A stretch of DNA of 62,922 bases, the filler included, from Choristocarpus tenellus KU-1152 (taxonomy: Eukaryota > Protista > Phaeophyceae), in NCBI GenBank assembly GCA_964200185.2. It is 11 parts of 11 records of this genome, joined end to end, with 100 filler letters (N's around TTAATTAATTAA, not from the genome) between each part and the next. Parts side by side here need not be neighbours in the genome. Positions count along the whole stretch, not along the records: positions 55,518 to 62,922 come from CAXNAD020006204.1; 10 more parts are not named here. One strand, given 5' to 3'. The notes under the pieces are model-generated. The model made no database searches, was not told the origin of the DNA, and saw nothing but the letters and a program-made list of their open reading frames with translations. A program made the position numbers and the translations under genes. This document shows, piece by piece, positions 4,685-62,922 of this stretch. The first letter of the stretch is position 1. Every line of letters starts with the position of its first letter.

Positions 4685-5199
4685 CATAAAAGGCATTGTG
4701 CTTGCAGTGTTTTGTTTGTGACATCCAGTTGTTGCTTTTTGGAGTAAGAAGTAAGTGCCCAAGTGTTGCTGGGAAGAGCAGTAGTGTTGGTATTGTAGTT
4801 GTTTAAATTGTTCTTGCCAACAGGAAGAACAGGACTTGATATTGGCAAATGTGGATACAGCTATATGGAAAATAGGAGGGAGATGATGTGTAGTAGGGTC
4901 TCAAACTGTGATAGCTGTGTGGGATGGATCCGCTTTCAAGGGTATGTGAACTAGTGTGATGCATATATCCAGTCAATGCTGTTTTGGTTTGCTGCAGATC
5001 TAATCCTTGCAGATTGATGATGATCGTAATGTCACCTGAAAGCTATTTGCGGGGGGGGGTATGTCACCAATGACACATTTGAACAGTTTGGTAACTGCCT
5101 CACAGACGATTTTCTCACTACGTTACAGTTTTGTTTAAAAAAAGAGGTGATGGAAATGGTATCTGACCCAAAGTATCTGGGGGGGGGGGGGGGTCAAAA

Positions 5200-5299
5200 N
5201 NNNNNNNNNNNNNNNNNNNNNNNNNNNNNNNNNNNNNNNNNNNTTAATTAATTAANNNNNNNNNNNNNNNNNNNNNNNNNNNNNNNNNNNNNNNNNNNN
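5200..5299. other. Artificial contig linker 44N-TTAATTAATTAA-44N (also 12454-12553, 17640-17739, 24271-24370, 28058-28157, 30852-30951, 35234-35333, 41845-41944, 44957-45056, 55418-55517)
   Basis: Ten identical 100-bp blocks with a six-frame stop 12-mer in the centre. Genes and TEs cut at a linker do not resume on the other side. Confidence 0.97.
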
Positions 5300-54500: not shown

Positions 54501-57186
54501 AGGTAGGTTTTGGCCCTTTCGCACTTAACCTATTTTTGTGACCCCAGGTAGAATACAACCTGTTCCATTGCTCTATTCGCACGATTGAGTCAGCAATATC
54601 GATATTTCCCCTATCTGCACACAAAATGACATCACAATTCGGCAAAGGCCTTTTCGGAATTGTGTAAAAAGGCGCCTTTTGACTATTTCTCAGGATCCTT
54701 CCTCAGAGTCACACTTCCTCAGAGTCATACGCACAGGTGATCGAGTCACCAGTTGTTTTGTAGATTTAGAATAGATGCATTCTCCTTGTCACATGGGATT
54801 GGATAACTTGATTCAACCATAGTAATTCCGTGAAAATAAGTTATTGATGAAAGGGGTTCGAACCAAAGAAATTGAAGCAAGAATCCGTCACCTTAACAAT
54901 TTACCACCCGTTATTGTATATGAACATTGTACACGAAGAATCCCAGACAGAGCCAGTGCGTAAACTTCCATACCTTCTTCCTTATTTCTTTTAGAGTGTA
55001 CCAAAAACGTAATTGTTTCACAACTACTAATACTGTTTGAGTGTTGTAGAAACCTTTGTAAAGTTGACAATCTTATCTGAACCCTGTCTGTCGTGGAGAA
55101 GGGTTCCCACCTATGACTTGGCGTCCAGTGTTCTCCAGGCTATTGGTTGTGGGTATGTCCTTTTACTTGCTAGATTGTATGTTTCTGGCATCTGTTCATG
55201 GAGTTGCTTGTTCAAATCTGCTGCCAACATGTTCACAATTCGACCACACTTTTCAGGTACACACCATCGAAAAATCCCACTGAAATTGTCCGAGCTTTTG
55301 GTGTCTAGGCCTTGCTCTTCTTTCTCCTCACCTTCAACTGCCACGGTGAAGGCTGTCCAACCCCCGAGAGCTGTCATCGAGGTGTGAGACGTAATGTGTC
55401 GCAGGTGTACGCCCATGNNNNNNNNNNNNNNNNNNNNNNNNNNNNNNNNNNNNNNNNNNNNTTAATTAATTAANNNNNNNNNNNNNNNNNNNNNNNNNNN
55501 NNNNNNNNNNNNNNNNNCACCACGTGCAACCAAACCAACCCAAAAAAGTAAAAATCGAAAAAAGGTTGAAAACCGGACTCCACCCCCCCCCCCCCCCAGA
55601 TACTTTGATCCTTATATTTGTGCTTTTGTAACATCTCTATCCTGTATTCCTCAACCCTGGGAAGTTTTGCACCCCATATTGTCGAAAGGTATCATATTTC
55701 ATGCTCACATTTGTCTTAATTTATCGCACCACTACACATATCAGAAAATAGTGCACAAAAACAAGGTAAAAGTGTGGGTGAGGTGGGTCTAACGAATTCA
55801 TTGCATTTTATCGACCACCCAACAATGTATCCATTATTGTACTATGTGAGGAGTAAGTACCACTAATCTGGAAGATCGGAGTTGTGCCACATTATCTCTC
55901 TCGCATTTCTTTTCTTATGCGTGCGTTATTTTCAGGGCTAATCCCCCATTCTTTGTCAATAGGGCCCAGCATGACACAATCACGATCTCCCCCAGTCACC
56001 TCCAGAGTGGTTCCTTGTCACAAGTTTTTCCTTATGACTACTTGTGTAGCACAGACCCCACACCCACATTGATCCGGTCAGCTTTCTCCCTCTCCTTCAA
56101 CTTCCTTGTAACGCAAAACATGGAAAAGGCACAGCACCCAGAGCATGCGATGCTCCCCAAAGAAATAGGTGCAATTGTGAGGTAATCCTTGCTGCCTTCC
56201 TGTTCAGAATGCCAGCACTGAGTAAGTCGTGTGCCTTTAGCTATCGTAAGTTTCCTTCGGCACCGAATTGCACACAATTAAAGTATGCACCAACAGATAC
56301 CATCTTGGCACCACCTCAAATACTATAAACAGGCTTTCACAATTTCCGAACATAGAACCCTAATATCTCCAGCCGTCTGACATGGTATCATCTAGGCTTT
56401 TGGTCAGAGTAAAACCACCAAAGATGAGGAATGATCTTGGGTCTTTTGAACCTTGGCAAGATACTCCATGCCCATACCTGAAGTCCCTTTAGGAGGGTGT
56501 AGCCGTAGAAGAACAATAGCTATGTACACATTATTAGCTGAAACGTTACTGCACCGTGCTGAAAATGCATGTAACCTCAAGGCATTCATAGGTCTAGTTA
56601 AAACTCAGCAAAACCTCCTTCTTAGCTGACATCACTCTCAAAGTTTCGTTGTCCCAATTGCTTGCCAGAGTATGTGGCGTTTTGAGTGCATCCTGTGTAT
56701 GTTTTGGTTCCTACTTCAAAAAAAAAAAACATTTCCAGGGAGCTTTCCACTTAAGGAATGTTCTTTCGCACAACGAGAGTAAGTTGCCCATCCATTATCA
56801 TCATCAAAGCAGCCGTGCAAAGATATTTTTGACACGTGCAGGTTCTCTATATTTTCTGGGGAACCTCTCTTTGGTACAAATACATGTATTGTTTCCATAT
56901 AATCAGTGGCACTGTTATCAACTAGAAAATCGTCCTCCAGTGACTACTGCTACAGTTTGTCACGTTAGAGCTTCGGAATATGCTGAAGTTGTCTTCCCAA
57001 TAGTGCTTAACATTTCAAAGTTCTCCAAGGTACAGCCACACACAGCATCAAAGGTACAACCAAGGAATATTTCACTTCACACCGCCAAATTGCACACAGT
57101 CAAAAAAACATTTCTCATGCACCATGCCCTCATCAATGTGCCAGCCCTTGTCTCCCTTGCAGCATTTGCCATGGTAGGCTCGCCTA

Positions 57187-59603
57187 TCAGGTCTTGAGCT
57201 CTCCAATGTAATGCTGTGCAAGAATCTCCAAGGCTTGAGTTGGGTGCTGCGGGCCATGCATTCCCTTGCTAGAGTCTCCTCCTGCATTCCTCAGCATGGC
57301 ATCACCTCCAGGATGGGCATTGAGGTAGGGTGTCACATCGTACACCTAAGATGAGCAACACCACCACTTGACATGTGAGCTTTTGCCAGTTGGACCATAA
57401 AATCAACAGTTCTCTTCAGTCAGACTGTAAGACATTACTGCATTGTGTTCAATGGGTATCGTCTATACATCAGCAACACATCAACTTCCACTATGATAAT
57501 AGTTGATTGGTCCATCAAGCATATGAGTCCATTGGTTGCCAAAATCCTCAAATGATAATGGAGCATTCACCCCATGCAGGTTTTGGCAGTGACAAAACGA
57601 TTTCAACACATCCTCAAGCAAGAGCAGGGCACAAGAGCTACTCTGCAAAATCTCAGGGTACCTTGCCATCAACAATGATCCATGCATCGTCCTCAGTGGA
57701 GTGCTTCGCAACCTCTGATGCTGTGAAAGGTCCACTATGTTTCAATTTCGCAAGGGGGTTTCGCAGAGCGCTGGAGGCCTGCAGGGTAATTTCCATACCT
57801 TCCTGGAAAAAATGTAGTAGAGAAGTTCGTTACAGTGGAATGGCATGGCATCCAGGAACAGATACATCTGGGTTAATCACGAATATGGGTGCCTGCAGCA
57901 TGATAGTAGTTGGAGAGATTAGATCAAACTACAAATTACAAAGCAAGGGGGCCCTGGTTGGTTTCATGTATCCTCAACAAAGAAATCCACATAACAAGGT
58001 CATGTGAAAATATAGGTGAGCAGAAAAAGGAAAAATAGATCGTAGTTCAAAAGTTCACCAAACAAAGAGTCACTCATTCACAAGCAGTCAAAAATTATCA
58101 GTCCTATGTCTGTACCAACATCCGACATCCAATCCCTTAACCACACAGCAAACTTCCACAAGAAGGACACAATTAGAACCCAACACACCTTCCCCCCCAT
58201 CCCTTCTTCCTGTCACCCTTCCAACTCCCCCTTCTCCCCACCTGTTGCGTCCATATTGGCTCATACCCCAATTCCATCTTGGCACGGGCAATGCTGAAGT
58301 AGTGGAACTTTCCTTCCTCAGCCACCCTTCTGTGTGTCAGTGTGGGCTTGAAACCTATGAGGGGAGCCAATAGGAGTGATAAGAGGTGAAGCACTACAGA
58401 AAAAAACGTGGCCACCATTAGTGGCCACCCTGGGCCTGGTGCCCGATACCCCAGCCCAGCCAAGGCACGATTGACGAATTCACTATTTGGCGATGGCTCT
58501 CCATCGGTGACAAAGTAGGCCCGCCCTCCTGAAGCAGTTTGCACTCCGCTGTTCTTGTCACCAGTCACCTTCTTCCCCTGCGCCAAGGGCAAGAGGGTAT
58601 GCCCCGCAAGAAGGTGCGAATGGGCCACGTTCCCGACGTAGACATAATCTGTCACGTTTGATCCATCTCCGATTGCCTTCACTCCCCGTCGAGTTCTTGA
58701 AATCAACTCTGGGAGGAGGTGGTGGTCTCTAGGTCCGTATACAGTGGCAGGTCGCAAACTACAGGTTAACATACCCCCACCTGTCCCGTTGGCTCGGAGT
58801 ACCTCCTGCTCCGCCTCCGCTACCGCAGCAGAGAAGGGATCAAGAAACGTTGAGGGGTAAGGGACATCTTCCGTTGCTGCCTTCAGGTCCGTACCCCCAA
58901 ACACCACACTGCGGGGGAAAGGTTTAGTGTTTGGAGGTTCGGTGGAATGGGAGGGTGAAATTAACGATTGATCAAGTCTTGTGCCATAAGCATCGATCTT
59001 TGAATAGGAAAGGACAGAAATGGACGTGTAAGTGTTCGTCGCAACGTTTAGCCCCTCACAAAGAGGAAACATTTGTAGGGGAGGACTACAGGGCGATGGA
59101 GATATTCAACCCAGACCCAAGCCGTTCAAGTTATATCGTTCAAATTCCTAAATCTACGAATATATAGATGTCCTTAGATCCGACCTGGTGCAGCTTGTGT
59201 AAATGAAGAGCCGTATGCCCCCCGCTGAAGCAGCCTCCAACAAGTTTCGGGTCCCTGAAATCAAAGTGGAGGCATCCGCCTTCGAAAATCCTCCTGTGGG
59301 ACGTGTTGCGTGCATAATCACCTCCTGACCTGCGACAGCCTTTCGGCAGCAATCGATACTTGAGGCACAACCTTTAATATTTCCTGAAATTCCTCCTTCA
59401 AGGGGTTGGGCGCTACCGAATGTGGTGACCTTGCATCCCTTCTGGACGAGGGTGGACACGATCGTGTCAGCGATGAAGCCACCCGAGGAAACCAGTACCT
59501 TGGTCCCAGCTGAGAGACCAGGGTAGTCGACATTCTTGTGGATTACATTGGACGGAATTTCCCTCACGAGGATGGCGGGTAGGTCTGTAGTTCCAGTCGG
59601 CAT
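57187..59603 (-). CDS. NSDHL/ERG26-like (3-beta-HSD/decarboxylase) extended SDR lacking catalytic motifs, fused to C-terminal cytochrome b5; complete, 461 aa (exons 59603-59185, 58908-58242, 57802-57662, 57345-57187)
   Basis: SDR: [80 protein letters not shown]. Cytochrome b5: [18 protein letters not shown]|[18 protein letters not shown]...GPQHP...YIGEL. All GT-AG, 1386 nt in frame. Confidence 0.92.
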
Positions 59604-59831
59604 TGGTGTTCCTTTTTAGCGTGTAGCATCAGTTCCTTGCTCACATGGTTTATGATTTGATTTTATTGTACCATTAAATGTATAGTAGTAAGTCATGCGT
59701 TCCAGGTTGAGCTACAGAGCAGGACGTGATCCATTTTTTGTGGTTATCTTGTACATAAGTATCTTTTTGAGAGCGACGTACAATCACGTCTAACAAGTCT
59801 GAACCTTTGATCCAAATCCCACCTTGACCTC
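59604..59831. promoter_or_regulatory. Candidate bidirectional promoter (228 bp between divergent ATGs)
   Basis: ATG 59603 (-) and proposed ATG 59832 (+). Confidence 0.5.
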
Positions 59832-61333
59832 ATGGGAAATGTTGAGAGCGGTCCAGAGGGACCTTTTCAAGCAGTGGACTCACTGAAGCACCGCCTTCAT
59901 GCACTCGAGGAAACGATCCAGAGCATTGAGGCAAGTGGGACTATGTACACCTGGCCATGATCCAGAGTTGGTGGGCAAACCACGAGGTGTTGTATTTAGC
60001 ACAGATGTTGCATTCGATGCTGCCCTTATTTGTATATCAAAATCGGTCGTCACTTGGACAGTGATTGGAGGATTAATGGATATTTAATTTCCTCGAATTA
60101 GAATCACCTTGGCAAAGGTAACCTGGCTGCATTGTGCAATCGATTGGGGTCCTGTTATAGGGCAGCCATATTTTCGATCGAAGGTCAAAGATTTGGTAAG
60201 GGTTTCTCAGTGCAGGGTACTGGCCATCATTTTCATGATAAAATACTTCTTGAACGTCCAATAAATGTACATACTGTTTCTCTTTGCAAATCTCACGTGA
60301 TAGGCCACCCACCAGAATACCCTGGGGCACCACTTGATTTTACCCGACACCGCCGACGTCAATGCTCATGACCCTCGCCTTGCTTGCAATGAGGGAGTAC
60401 GCGTGCTAACGGGACCAGTCATAGGAGAAGTGACGGCAAATTCGGTGGTGAGACACTTGATACATAGCTGTAGAAGTAGGCAATGCATGACAAGATCCCA
60501 AGACTAGTCCCAAACCATTCCATATAGGCAATGTCGACCGTCCATACCGATCATGGTCTCAAAAGGTTGTTGGGTTGTGGTTTCCACTCAATGAATCATT
60601 ACGTCGTCAAATACAGGTGATCCTACTGGAGGTTGAGGTGGATCCAGCCCTGGGATCATCAACAAACGTAACATGTTTCGTTTCCCTTGTTGATGACAAC
60701 TGCCCCAGAGGACGTACTGTTAGTGTGACAGCTATTTGCATGCCCTCACACAGACCAAGGGTCTTCAGGGTCGGAGGAGGTGTCTCAGAGATCCTCTGGC
60801 CAGGACGAACATACACTGCATGCTTCGCTGGGGTACGAGCTACTGATGCACGAGCTCGTATAGGGAGGTTAGAACAAGGGTTGAAATGTGCATACTTCTG
60901 ACTTTCTTGCATCCATGAGGATTTAAAAAGGGCCGTGGACTAAAGAAGGACGAAAATAAGGATACTCTAGGGCTTCAAGCATTGTGTGCTTTAGATATCA
61001 ACAAGGGTGTCTTACAAGGTTTCCTCAACCGGTTTGTCATAGCTGGCCCATACTTCCTCTCCCAGGTGCAAGTGGAGATTTCCCGTACTGTAAAATGCTG
61101 AGGACTCCACAATTTGGACTACACAAGTGCACCAACCTTGACATCCCTCAACTCGGTTTCCCCACTACTCGGTCCTTGTTGACTTTGGCAGGTTTCGCAC
61201 TCCTGATACCTGCTTCAATGCTTCCCTGAGGGTATTAGCTGTAAGTGCAGACCGCCCAGATGTAGTTGCCCCAGGTGAGCCAATGCTATGGCGCCACCTC
61301 AGTGAACGGGTTTTGCGTGGGGAGCTGCCGAAG
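59832..61333 (+). CDS. PhoD-like (alkaline phosphatase D family) protein, N-terminal part (exons 59832-59930?, 60118-60195?, 60304-60447, 60617-60867, 61192-61333); continues beyond window
   Basis: GPVIGEVTANSV|VILLEV, L.PGRTY, IGR|FRTP, LRVLAVS, EPMLWRHL match the FN3-like N-domain and start of the PhoD metallophosphatase domain. Catalytic GDQVYAD is not in the window. The first two exons are less certain. Confidence 0.7.
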
Positions 61334-61544
61334 GTGGGTAGCAATTGAGTGAAGAGGAGGGATTTCTATCGGCAAGGGGGAAAGGGACATACTAGACTAG
61401 GCTGGTACTAGGGAAGGCACAAAATACACTCAAACGTAAGGAAATCCCATTCAAATTTTGTCATAGTCCCTCCTCTAATAGTGCATGTATATTTATTGCA
61501 TTGTTAATAATGGCTTGCACAGGCTGTGAATGACCTACAGTTAT

Positions 61545-61775
61545 GAGTGAAAGTATCTTAGAGGGTACGGTTTTCGCCCTGTTTGTCCATTTGGGGCTTA
61601 GCTTCCCGTGGGTTCTTTTAGGACATTTAGGTAAAATGTACGTTATGAAAAGGTGTGTTCGAAACATGGATATTGACACTCCTAACAACACAATAGCCGA
61701 AATTACATAGAAATCGCAAAATTGGATTTTGGCCCCCAAATGGACTCAGCTCTACACTCTAAGATACATTGGCTC
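61545..61775. mobile_element. MITE family A, slightly deleted copy
   Basis: gagtgaaagtatcttagagggtac ... ctctaagatacattggctc; flanks TAT/TAT. Confidence 0.9.
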
Positions 61776-62121
61776 TATCATACTACAAAGCATGCTGAGA
61801 AATAAGTTTAAGGTAGCAGGAAAGATCAATCACATACATTCAAAGCATGTGCAATTGCAAAGATTTCTTGGACAGATGAGAGGAGGGCATGATCACAGAG
61901 GTGATATATTCCATCCTCATTTTACGCAGATGATTGATATCACCAATTCTTACTTGTTTTGAACTTCCTCCGTTCGGAATTAAATGTAACATAAATTTTG
62001 AGCCCTGATGAAGAAGCAAAATATTTTATTACGTATTCATATTTTATGGGTGTATTGTGCAGCACTAAATGGTTGCCCACCAAAAACTCAAGAAAAATGG
62101 GGAGTGTACACCTGTCTATGA

Positions 62122-62308
62122 GGCTCAAAGTATCTGAGGGGGGGTGGGGGGGGGTGGTCTACACCAGAGTGTCCATTCTGGCCCTGACCAGGAGAAGTGA
62201 ATTTACATTATCCATCCGAAGCATGCGACCCAATCACCCAAAAATCGCGACATGGAAAAATGGTTCCCAAATTGGATAGCTGCTGCCCGCCCCCAGATAC
62301 TTTGAGTC
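62122..62308. mobile_element. MITE family B, full-length
   Basis: ggctcaaagtatctg ... ccccagatactttgagtc; perfect 4-bp TSD ATGA. Confidence 0.93.
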
Positions 62309-62329
62309 ATGATTCCATCCCTAAAGCCC

Positions 62330-62922
62330 TCGAGAACTCCATTCCACCAAGATATTTCGCCATATCCACTAGGAAACTTGGGGGGACCTTGCTAGCCTTC
62401 TCAGTCTTTTCCTTGCTATGATGGGGGAATTTTGAAGACATTGTTACCCTTGGACTGCTACACCATAGACTGTGAAGAGGCTCGACCAGACGCACTCTAG
62501 TGTCTCCTGGTATACATCTATACGATTCCATTGTGGTCTCCGCCAGCTCCTCTGTTGGCCACCCCCACATCTTCCTTCAGTTACTGGGTGGAATGAAAGA
62601 ACCCCAGGTCGTTGATGTTGAGGTCAGGTAGGTTGGTTGGGTGTGTTTCTATAACAACGTTGTCCCCTGTCACCTCCTCGATTGCCTCCATGATCCCCCC
62701 CTTGGTGTGTGGTTTTGACTCATCTTGCTGCACGAAGAAGATGCATCCTTCCGGCCTAGGCATGTGTCCCTTGATTGTTGGGATGACATCCTCGATCATG
62801 TGCTTCAAATACCTCTCCCCGTCCACTGTGGCTGGCACAAGTGTTTCAGGCACCCCCGAAAGCTTACCTCCACAGGATGAATAACTCCAATCTACGGGCC
62901 TATAGATGATACTGATGCACGT
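62330..62922 (-). mobile_element. Decayed Tc1/mariner transposase, plant-mariner (DD39D-like) type
   Basis: VIPTIK..MP...FVQQDESKPH ... HPTNLPDLNINDLGFFHSTQ resembles QQDNA.PH...QPPNSPDLNVLDLGFF; an in-frame stop and frameshifts follow. Confidence 0.85.

Follow-up and report, generated by a model that had tools for sequence, protein, structure and literature searches.

A cytochrome b5 joined to an NSDHL/ERG26-like dehydrogenase with replaced catalytic motifs in Choristocarpus tenellus, a candidate adaptor of the algal sterol machinery

We analysed a window of DNA (the whole stretch of 62,922 nucleotides, filler included) from the brown alga Choristocarpus tenellus. Its positions 55518-62922 are the whole 7405-bp contig CAXNAD020006204.1, which encodes on the minus strand, from 59603 to 57187, a gene of four exons and 461 codons that we delimited by three-frame reading and splice signals. 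The gene joins a short-chain dehydrogenase/reductase (SDR) of the NSDHL/ERG26 type to a cytochrome b5 (b5). Motifs for the cofactor and for catalysis are replaced in the SDR, the two histidines expected to hold haem are kept in the b5, and the same combination occurs in other brown algae and in yellow-green algae (together the PX clade). We lean towards the explanation that the product is a non-catalytic, ERG26-derived adaptor of the endoplasmic reticulum (ER) membrane, with a working b5 that would serve the sterol machinery. The gene is organised as follows.

Exon 1, 59603-59185, minus strand: start codon, conserved N-terminal motif ..IPSNV..YPGLS and Rossmann half of the SDR, its cofactor motifs degraded (3Beta_HSD, 1.2e-6)
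Intron 1, 59184-58909, minus strand: 276 nt, GT..AG, phase 2; joint seen in run X2, position the same in Ectocarpus and Scytosiphon
Exon 2, 58908-58242, minus strand: catalytic/substrate half of the SDR and membrane helix (3Beta_HSD, 2.1e-27; NSDHL 6jkg, 3.9e-18)
Intron 2, 58241-57803, minus strand: 439 nt, GT..AG, phase 0; joint seen in run X2
Exon 3, 57802-57662, minus strand: last SDR helix, linker with LRNP motif and first b5 strands (Cyt-b5 profile positions 1-21)
Intron 3, 57661-57346, minus strand: 316 nt, GT..AG, phase 0, splitting the b5 after ..IVDGK; joint seen in run X2, position the same in other brown algae
Exon 4, 57345-57187, minus strand: b5 core with HPGG at 57304-57315, GPQHP at 57241-57255 and the TGA stop at 57187-57189 (Cyt-b5, 4e-12)

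Three runs of one study cover the stretch, none of them recorded as RNA, and we placed their contigs on it. Run X1 gives the whole stretch in a single flat piece and is probably source DNA. The depth of run X2 is ~570-1050 in exons versus 4-75 in introns, and its contigs are joined at 58908|59185 (skipping 276 nt), 57801|58241 (skipping 439) and 57343|57660 (skipping 316), all with CT..AC on the plus strand, so that they match exactly the three introns predicted for the minus-strand gene. By its joints and its exon/intron depth, and not by its record label, X2 is RNA-like. One X2 contig of 813 nt joins exon 2, which is SDR, to exon 3, which holds the SDR end and the b5 start, and exon 1 is covered by an X2 contig over 59185-59535. 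No base differences were seen in the placed contigs. As X2 has no contig over 59536-59700, where the start codon lies, we assigned the start by homology to the Discosporangium orthologue P0002, whose N-terminus reads MPTDTDLP.. versus MPTGTTDLP.. in the window; exon 1 is 53% identical to this protein. A Ser codon (AG|T) is divided between exons 1 and 2, reading through into intron 2 meets a stop after 22 codons, and the G+C content is 51-55% in the exons and 42-45% in the introns. A minor X2 joint at 57343|57797 skips 453 nt, using a GT 4 bases into exon 3; its depth is about 1% of that at the main junctions. There is also a low-depth X2 contig over the intron 2 region (57797-58184).

The NCBI model of the gene, P0001 (376 aa, a database protein with 100% identity), already joins exons 2-4 and lacks exon 1. 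It starts at an in-frame ATG at 59072 within intron 1, which gives it 55 intron-derived residues, and it omits the Rossmann half. We kept exon 1 because the spliced X2 contigs and the Discosporangium orthologue back it. In the searches below the exons of the window were used singly, and the longer chain was represented by P0001 (exons 2-4 as annotated) and by P0006, the full-length Scytosiphon orthologue. Orthologues with the same degraded fusion were collected by word-indexed and exhaustive protein searches and by cluster look-ups.

Discosporangium: P0002, partial
Scytosiphon: P0006, 474 aa
Ectocarpus species: P0262 and P0265-P0267
Hapterophycus: P0106
Cladosiphon: P0260
Nemacystus: P0261
Tribonema gayanum, a yellow-green alga: P0264, a Trinity transcript with both domains
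A second Tribonema species: P0402, NCBI KAG5187930.1

The Gly loop and the YxxxK motif are missing in every one of these proteins, brown-algal and Tribonema alike; we found no orthologue that retains YxxxK. All orthologue models with a complete C-terminus have the b5, with HPGG and HGPQHP. The four-exon layout is common to the window, Ectocarpus sp. 12, E. fasciculatus and Scytosiphon, as seen by tblastn. Between the window and Scytosiphon, identity is 43-52% in the SDR exons and 72-82% in exons 3-4 (exon 3 is 72-77% identical to its orthologues). We estimated the ratio of non-synonymous to synonymous substitution rates (dN/dS) by the Nei-Gojobori method on codon maps built from the tblastn matches, after removing residues near exon borders. 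For Ectocarpus sp. 12 and E. fasciculatus it is 0.33 in the SDR and 0.14 in the linker plus b5, at a synonymous rate (dS) of ~0.2. For Ectocarpus sp. 12 and Scytosiphon it is 0.21 and 0.09, at a dS of ~1, which is near saturation. Both halves, with ratios well below 1, are thus under purifying selection, and the b5 more strongly; overall, the ratios range from 0.2 to 0.33 in the SDR part and from 0.07 to 0.14 in the b5 part.

Several public annotations hide part of this gene. The E. fasciculatus annotation makes a gene of its own, of 53 aa, out of the last b5 exon (L008:5531-6230), and after IVDGK the models of E. siliculosus and Ectocarpus sp. 8 continue into the intron. As a consequence of these mis-set models (P0265-P0267), the b5 is concealed in the databases. 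Corrections follow for several brown-algal annotations that miss either exon 1 or the b5.

Such annotations, which truncate the b5 or split it off, could be taken to mean that the fusion is an artefact merging two neighbouring genes, and an in-frame ATG in exon 3 (..EGMEIT..) makes a separate b5 gene imaginable. This possibility, or that of a decaying gene or pseudogene, is scarcely credible. The spliced X2 contig ties exons 2 and 3 together, four species have the same exon structure, the T. gayanum transcript holds both domains, and other protists encode such fusions in a single open reading frame (ORF). On these grounds (contig, exons and single-ORF relatives) we rejected two separate genes. 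The reading frame has moreover stayed intact across the presumably old split between brown algae and Tribonema, and dN/dS is well below 1. The sequence-only reading had proposed one four-exon gene rather than two merged ones, with exon 3 spanning the boundary, and the data bear this out: the first ~17 residues of exon 3 align with the last, C-terminal helix of NSDHL, and the remainder provides the first b5 strands.

The SDR half matches the Pfam family 3Beta_HSD (PF01073) at 28.3 bits in exon 1 (1.2e-6) and 96.3 bits in exon 2 (2.1e-27), for a cut-off of 22. The solved structure closest to exon 2 is that of human NSDHL (6jkg, 3.9e-18), and exon 2 is 40% identical to vertebrate NSDHL. We aligned the window with vertebrate NSDHL, Capsaspora NSDHL and the active fusions described below, and obtained the following differences.

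59466-59492, minus strand: VSSGGFIAD, in place of the Gly-rich NAD loop TGGxGFxG; one residue shorter, last Gly changed to Asp
59412-59432, minus strand: KVTTFGS, where the acidic residue at the end of beta2 is changed to Gly (VFD in active relatives, TFG here)
59250-59267, minus strand: TLISGT, in place of VNVxGT; Asn lost
58821-58835, minus strand: FSAAV, in place of YxxxK (YxxTK); Tyr changed to Phe and Lys to Val
58350-58427, minus strand: hydrophobic helix, homologue of the membrane-associated NSDHL helix; Kyte-Doolittle maximum of 2.36 over 19 residues
Alignment only: HATRP in the window versus HxASP in active relatives
Alignment only: LRPATVYGP in the window versus IRPHGIFGP in active relatives
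Alignment only: TDGEPSPNS in the window versus TNxEPxPFW in active relatives

The losses in the Gly loop, before xxGT and at YxxxK had been read from the DNA alone; they stand where they were placed, and in the alignment with 6jkg FSAAV lies under its YTETK. The same holds for the retained structural motifs and the hydrophobic segment. The blocks GDGxNVxD(F/Y)xYVGNVAHxHLLA, LGY, the hydrophobic helix and LGYxPxW are intact, and the GG pair of the NAD loop survives.

We then surveyed the columns in which at least 85% of 22 active NSDHL and fusion sequences have one residue, and read them in nine PX-clade sequences (numbering of P0006). Nearly all PX-clade sequences have replaced G42, F45, G47, F64, D65, L83, A103, T135, Y165, T168 and K169, and also P204, H205, I207, F208, P210, T246, V248, N281, W288 and H354. 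Among these, G42, G47, D65, A103, T135, Y165 and K169 are invariant in the 22 active sequences and replaced in all nine PX-clade ones, except for D65, replaced in only seven of the nine: both Tribonema sequences retain the Asp. As placed by the alignment, the replaced positions span cofactor, catalytic and probable pocket sites. Some replacements are fixed in the clade (Ser47, Tyr208 by F208Y, Asp281 by N281D, and Arg/Gln354), which suggests new constraint rather than drift. The Tyr165 position varies: it is A, S, H, L or P in the PX clade, and F in the window.

We tested the fold on the orthologue P0006, using AlphaFold with an alignment of 32 sequences. The model has a predicted local distance difference test score (pLDDT) of 88.9 and a predicted template-modelling score (pTM) of 0.86, with Rossmann strands, a b5 fold at the end and a long helix over the hydrophobic segment (residues 315-332). 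Foldseek matches it to extended SDRs at 1e-16, with template-modelling scores by target of 0.7-0.77, and a search of the ESM Atlas gave only generic SDR clusters. The SDR half would therefore seem to have retained its fold and to have lost NAD(P) binding as well as dehydrogenation/decarboxylation. Alternatively, this half might not be inert: through its altered pocket it could bind a sterol intermediate or a nucleotide and, as a sensor or regulator, gate the flow of electrons through the b5, or it could retain some catalysis by non-canonical residues. The replacements fixed in the clade, as opposed to random ones, speak for such a role, as do the surviving GG pair and the confident fold prediction. 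We nevertheless judge it quite unlikely, since at least seven independent cofactor and catalytic positions were lost together, and residues at the Tyr position change freely (F, L, A, S, H, P), which is what an unconstrained site would show. In addition, an Asp or Glu in place of the last Gly in the NAD loop of an SDR is expected to repel the pyrophosphate.

The b5 half has the opposite character. The Cyt-b5 family (PF00173) matches exon 3 at 3.9e-3 (profile 1-21) and exon 4 at 4e-12 and 46.4 bits (profile 23-74), for a cut-off of 23.7. Among solved structures, 59 b5-type chains match this part, with a best value of 9e-16. Rat outer-membrane b5 matches exon 4 at 1e-15, with both axial His over the His of HPGG and GPQH, so the claim that the two haem ligands are kept holds against solved structures. 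Both axial His are invariant across the whole fusion family, and the PX clade keeps 15 of the 18 family-conserved b5 positions, both His included. The b5 half is thus probably functional and haem-binding. We found no tail anchor: exons 3-4 contain no hydrophobic stretch, and the protein ends in ..IGELKT, five residues past the b5 core. The only strongly hydrophobic stretch of the window protein is the helix within the SDR. Hence, the SDR must provide the membrane association.

The architecture itself turned out to be more widespread than expected. The sequence-only reading knew of no described counterpart, and the architecture is less singular than that suggested: a local phmmer search with the b5 tail, among the hits that we fetched, retrieved 3Beta_HSD+b5 fusions with intact TGGxGFLG, beta2 Asp and YxxxK.

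Active fusions: P0115, P0117, P0124, P0138, P0150, P0155, P0158, P0163, P0174
Further active fusions: P0257-P0259, P0291, P0292, P0364, P0379, P0382, P0397

The cluster of P0259 contains Nannochloropsis oceanica KAM3577849.1 / GAB5031980.1, which its source calls 'sterol-4-alpha-carboxylate 3-decarboxylating'; that of P0382 includes 'NSDHL, partial [Symbiodinium sp. KB8]'; and many others come from uncultured (metagenomic) protists. Five of the active fusions were traced to eukaryotic contigs, in which the whole fusion is one uninterrupted ORF, and many of the active fusions have an N-terminal transmembrane helix. Active and degraded fusions share the YxGLP motif before beta1 (YPGLP), the LRNP linker and the b5 signature GFHGPQHP. 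Hence, the architecture is not unique to brown algae, and the novelty is the degraded PX-clade variant. We found no paper describing the fusion family or a brown-algal ERG26 in the literature that we searched, which lacks most subscription journals, and the fusion family appears in public databases under automatic names.

Two of the active fusions (P0150 and P0364) have two tandem b5 domains, each with HPGG and GPQH. On contig L002 (Logan SRR9330154), the SDR::b5::b5 gene of P0364 (3001-4572, plus strand) has an Erg28 gene 186 bp downstream (4758-5255, minus strand; PF03694, 4.6e-15), the model of which appears to miss the domain's first third. Elsewhere in protists the same SDR is fused to adh_short or to reticulon. 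Five proteins of ~700-730 aa (P0136, P0141, P0167, P0181 and P0184) consist of an ERG26-type 3Beta_HSD followed by adh_short, another fusion that seems not to have been described, and could combine the dehydrogenase/decarboxylase and the 3-ketoreductase of the same pathway. A 580-aa protein from a JGI metagenome, P0243, keeps TGGAGFLG and the b5 and has DPEAAALAAAE at the place of YxxxK. Its neighbour in the tree is the active P0155 (98/94), and it is perhaps a second, independent loss of the catalytic pair.

We inferred the phylogeny of 62 SDR domains, after removal of the b5 and of the intron-derived start of P0001, using IQ-TREE with LG+C20+F+G4 by posterior mean site frequencies. Support values are ultrafast bootstrap / Shimodaira-Hasegawa-like approximate likelihood ratio test. 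The degraded fusions form a clade (100/99) with Tribonema basal and with Choristocarpus plus Discosporangium sister to the Ectocarpales, the order to be expected under vertical descent. A subclade (97/92) unites this clade with the Nannochloropsis-type fusions, P0111 and P0291/P0379. P0111 is the best non-fused match of exon 2 and shares 46-47% identity with vertebrate NSDHL. All fusions, the degraded ones included, make one clade (99/91). It belongs to an NSDHL-type group (98/92) together with Cyanophora-type sequences, the adh_short-fused ones (the two in the tree, P0136 and P0141, form a clade at 100/100), metazoan and Capsaspora NSDHL, and the plant reticulon-fused proteins. The inner nodes of this group, including the links to metazoan NSDHL, have values of only 76-86, and deep nodes need care since 12 rows of the tree, several of them in the degraded clade, deviate in amino-acid composition. 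According to the tree, the degraded fusion descends from active ERG26::b5 fusions, and the loss probably preceded the divergence of brown and yellow-green algae.

The tree also settles to which family the SDR belongs. Vertebrate SDR42E1 ranked just below the brown-algal orthologues in the word-indexed search (~122 bits), which made it a candidate. However, SDR42E1 and its plant relative make a clade apart (100/100), with a split at 100/96 between them and the NSDHL-type sequences, and the tree rejects this membership in favour of the NSDHL/ERG26 type claimed from the sequence alone. The VVFGG and YFxxDG motifs that the window gene has in common with SDR42E1 and its TMEM254-fused plant homologues look like a side-effect of divergence; those proteins keep their catalytic motifs and have no b5.

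What could such a protein do? Sterol C4-demethylation is carried out by the sterol C4-methyl oxidase (SMO/ERG25), an ERG26-type dehydrogenase/decarboxylase and a ketoreductase, with ERG28 tethering ERG25/26/27, and SMO is fed with electrons by the NADH-cytochrome b5 reductase/b5 system (PMC6385002). A link between the fusion and this step is indirectly supported: the Erg28 adjacency, the fusions to adh_short and reticulon, and the membrane association supplied by the SDR fit with a b5 placed on ERG26 for the C4-demethylation complex. In the explanation that we prefer, the N-terminal 370 residues would be an extended SDR that has kept its fold and membrane helix and performs no NAD(P) binding or turnover, and the C-terminal 80 residues a haem-binding b5 devoid of its own tail anchor. 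Before brown and yellow-green algae diverged, the enzyme half would have been disabled but retained as an anchor or adaptor, and the active ERG26::b5 type of ancestor would persist in other ochrophytes, such as Nannochloropsis. The SDR half may hold the b5 at the ER membrane, close to the C4-demethylation enzymes, through surfaces inherited from ERG26. Docking of this kind onto SMO/ERG26, possibly as a heterodimer with an active ERG26 as the sequence-only reading proposed, would be conceivable. Once reduced by b5 reductase, the b5 would pass single electrons to the di-iron sterol C4-methyl oxidase, the most likely acceptor, and possibly also to the C5-desaturase or other sterol oxygenases. The loss of activity, the binding of haem, the location at the ER and the identity of the acceptor are all presumed from sequence in this scheme.

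Several observations weigh against this explanation. The degraded clade and the Nannochloropsis-type fusion are only weakly supported as direct sisters (75/38), and an Erg28 gene was seen beside a fusion just once, on one protist contig. The putative substrate-pocket positions PH204-205, W288 and H354 are changed too, so the SDR half may also have lost the binding of sterols. What is said of NAD binding, haem binding and location is predicted from sequence. Furthermore, canonical ERG25, ERG26 and ERG28 were found missing in a diatom and a pelagophyte by Desmond and Gribaldo (PMC2817430), and plants have a dedicated b5-like protein for CYP51 (PMC13155568). The acceptor may thus differ, and the partner of the b5 could be another oxygenase.

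A broader version of this argument is that the protein is a generic membrane-tethered b5, in which the SDR is a mere anchor that replaces the tail anchor. It would then serve any b5-dependent enzyme of the ER, such as fatty-acid desaturases, sphingolipid hydroxylases or P450s like CYP51, with no special tie to C4-demethylation. The b5 is indeed the most constrained module, the pocket positions of the SDR are changed, some ochrophytes are reported to lack canonical ERG25/ERG28 (PMC2817430), and the plant protein serves CYP51, not SMO (PMC13155568). However, a fold of 370 residues at dN/dS 0.2-0.33, with replacements fixed in the clade, far exceeds what a single-helix anchor needs, and in active relatives the ERG26-type enzyme that bears the same b5 is a working one, in one case with Erg28 alongside. 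We see this alternative as possible and somewhat unlikely. It is unlikely, too, that brown and yellow-green algae have no active ERG26 homologue at all, their only copy having become the b5 carrier while a non-homologous enzyme took over the C4-decarboxylation. If this were true, the degraded SDR would mark the site where the C4-decarboxylation machinery assembles.

Comparison with known systems helps to place the adaptor that we propose. Relative to NSDHL/ERG26 itself, the window protein has the same Pfam family, fold, membrane-associated helix, C-terminal helix and side of the tree, with 40% identity over exon 2, but the Gly loop, the beta2 Asp, the Asn of NxxGT, the Tyr/Lys pair and pocket residues are replaced and a b5 is added. 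The active protist fusions share its architecture, YxGLP, the LRNP linker, HGPQHP and its clade in the tree; they differ from it in that TGGxGFxG, the beta2 Asp and YxxxK are intact, an N-terminal transmembrane helix is present in many of them, and some have two b5 domains. Arabidopsis RTN19 (3beta-HSD/D2) and RTN20 are also ERG26-type SDRs fused to another ER-membrane module, and the role of RTN20 has been interpreted as regulatory rather than purely catalytic (PMC5797236). Their partner domain is a reticulon, however, not a b5, and RTN19 is enzymatically active. In plants, the specialised b5 CB5LP is anchored in the membrane in an unusual way and works for a single step of sterol synthesis (PMC13155568), but it is a stand-alone, N-terminally anchored b5 without an SDR, acts with CYP51 (the sterol 14-demethylase) and is found only in plants. 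In the classical b5 fusions, i.e. front-end fatty-acid desaturases, Scs7/FA2H, nitrate reductase, sulfite oxidase and flavocytochrome b2 (partners listed in PMC8655872), the b5 is likewise attached covalently to its working partner and has both axial His conserved. In those proteins the partner uses the electrons, whereas here it derives from a dehydrogenase that needs none and appears dead.

To our knowledge, the delivery of b5 to sterol enzyme complexes is poorly understood outside yeast, mammals and plants. Brown algae make fucosterol, and their sterol pathway is incompletely known. The gene points to a lineage-wide solution in protists, in which a b5 is welded onto the ERG26-type enzyme of the C4-demethylation complex, and the brown and yellow-green form would be a clear natural example of a pseudoenzyme kept on as an adaptor. 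It also offers a handle on the brown-algal sterol pathway, testable in Ectocarpus. For the plant lineage, a dedicated b5 for another sterol step was reported only in 2025 (PMC13155568).

In two Ectocarpus species the SDR-b5 gene is divergently paired with a gene of the ATP-synthase alpha/beta family (L007:1-979; L008:1-2427, minus strand), and no such neighbour is within reach in the C. tenellus piece. The neighbouring ORFs tested in that piece (59832-59960, 60334-60504, 60575-60898, 62584-62853 and 56649-57194) have no Pfam matches. The first of them, on the plus strand (MGNVESG..), begins 228 bp upstream of the ATG of the SDR-b5 gene, with which it may share a divergent promoter.

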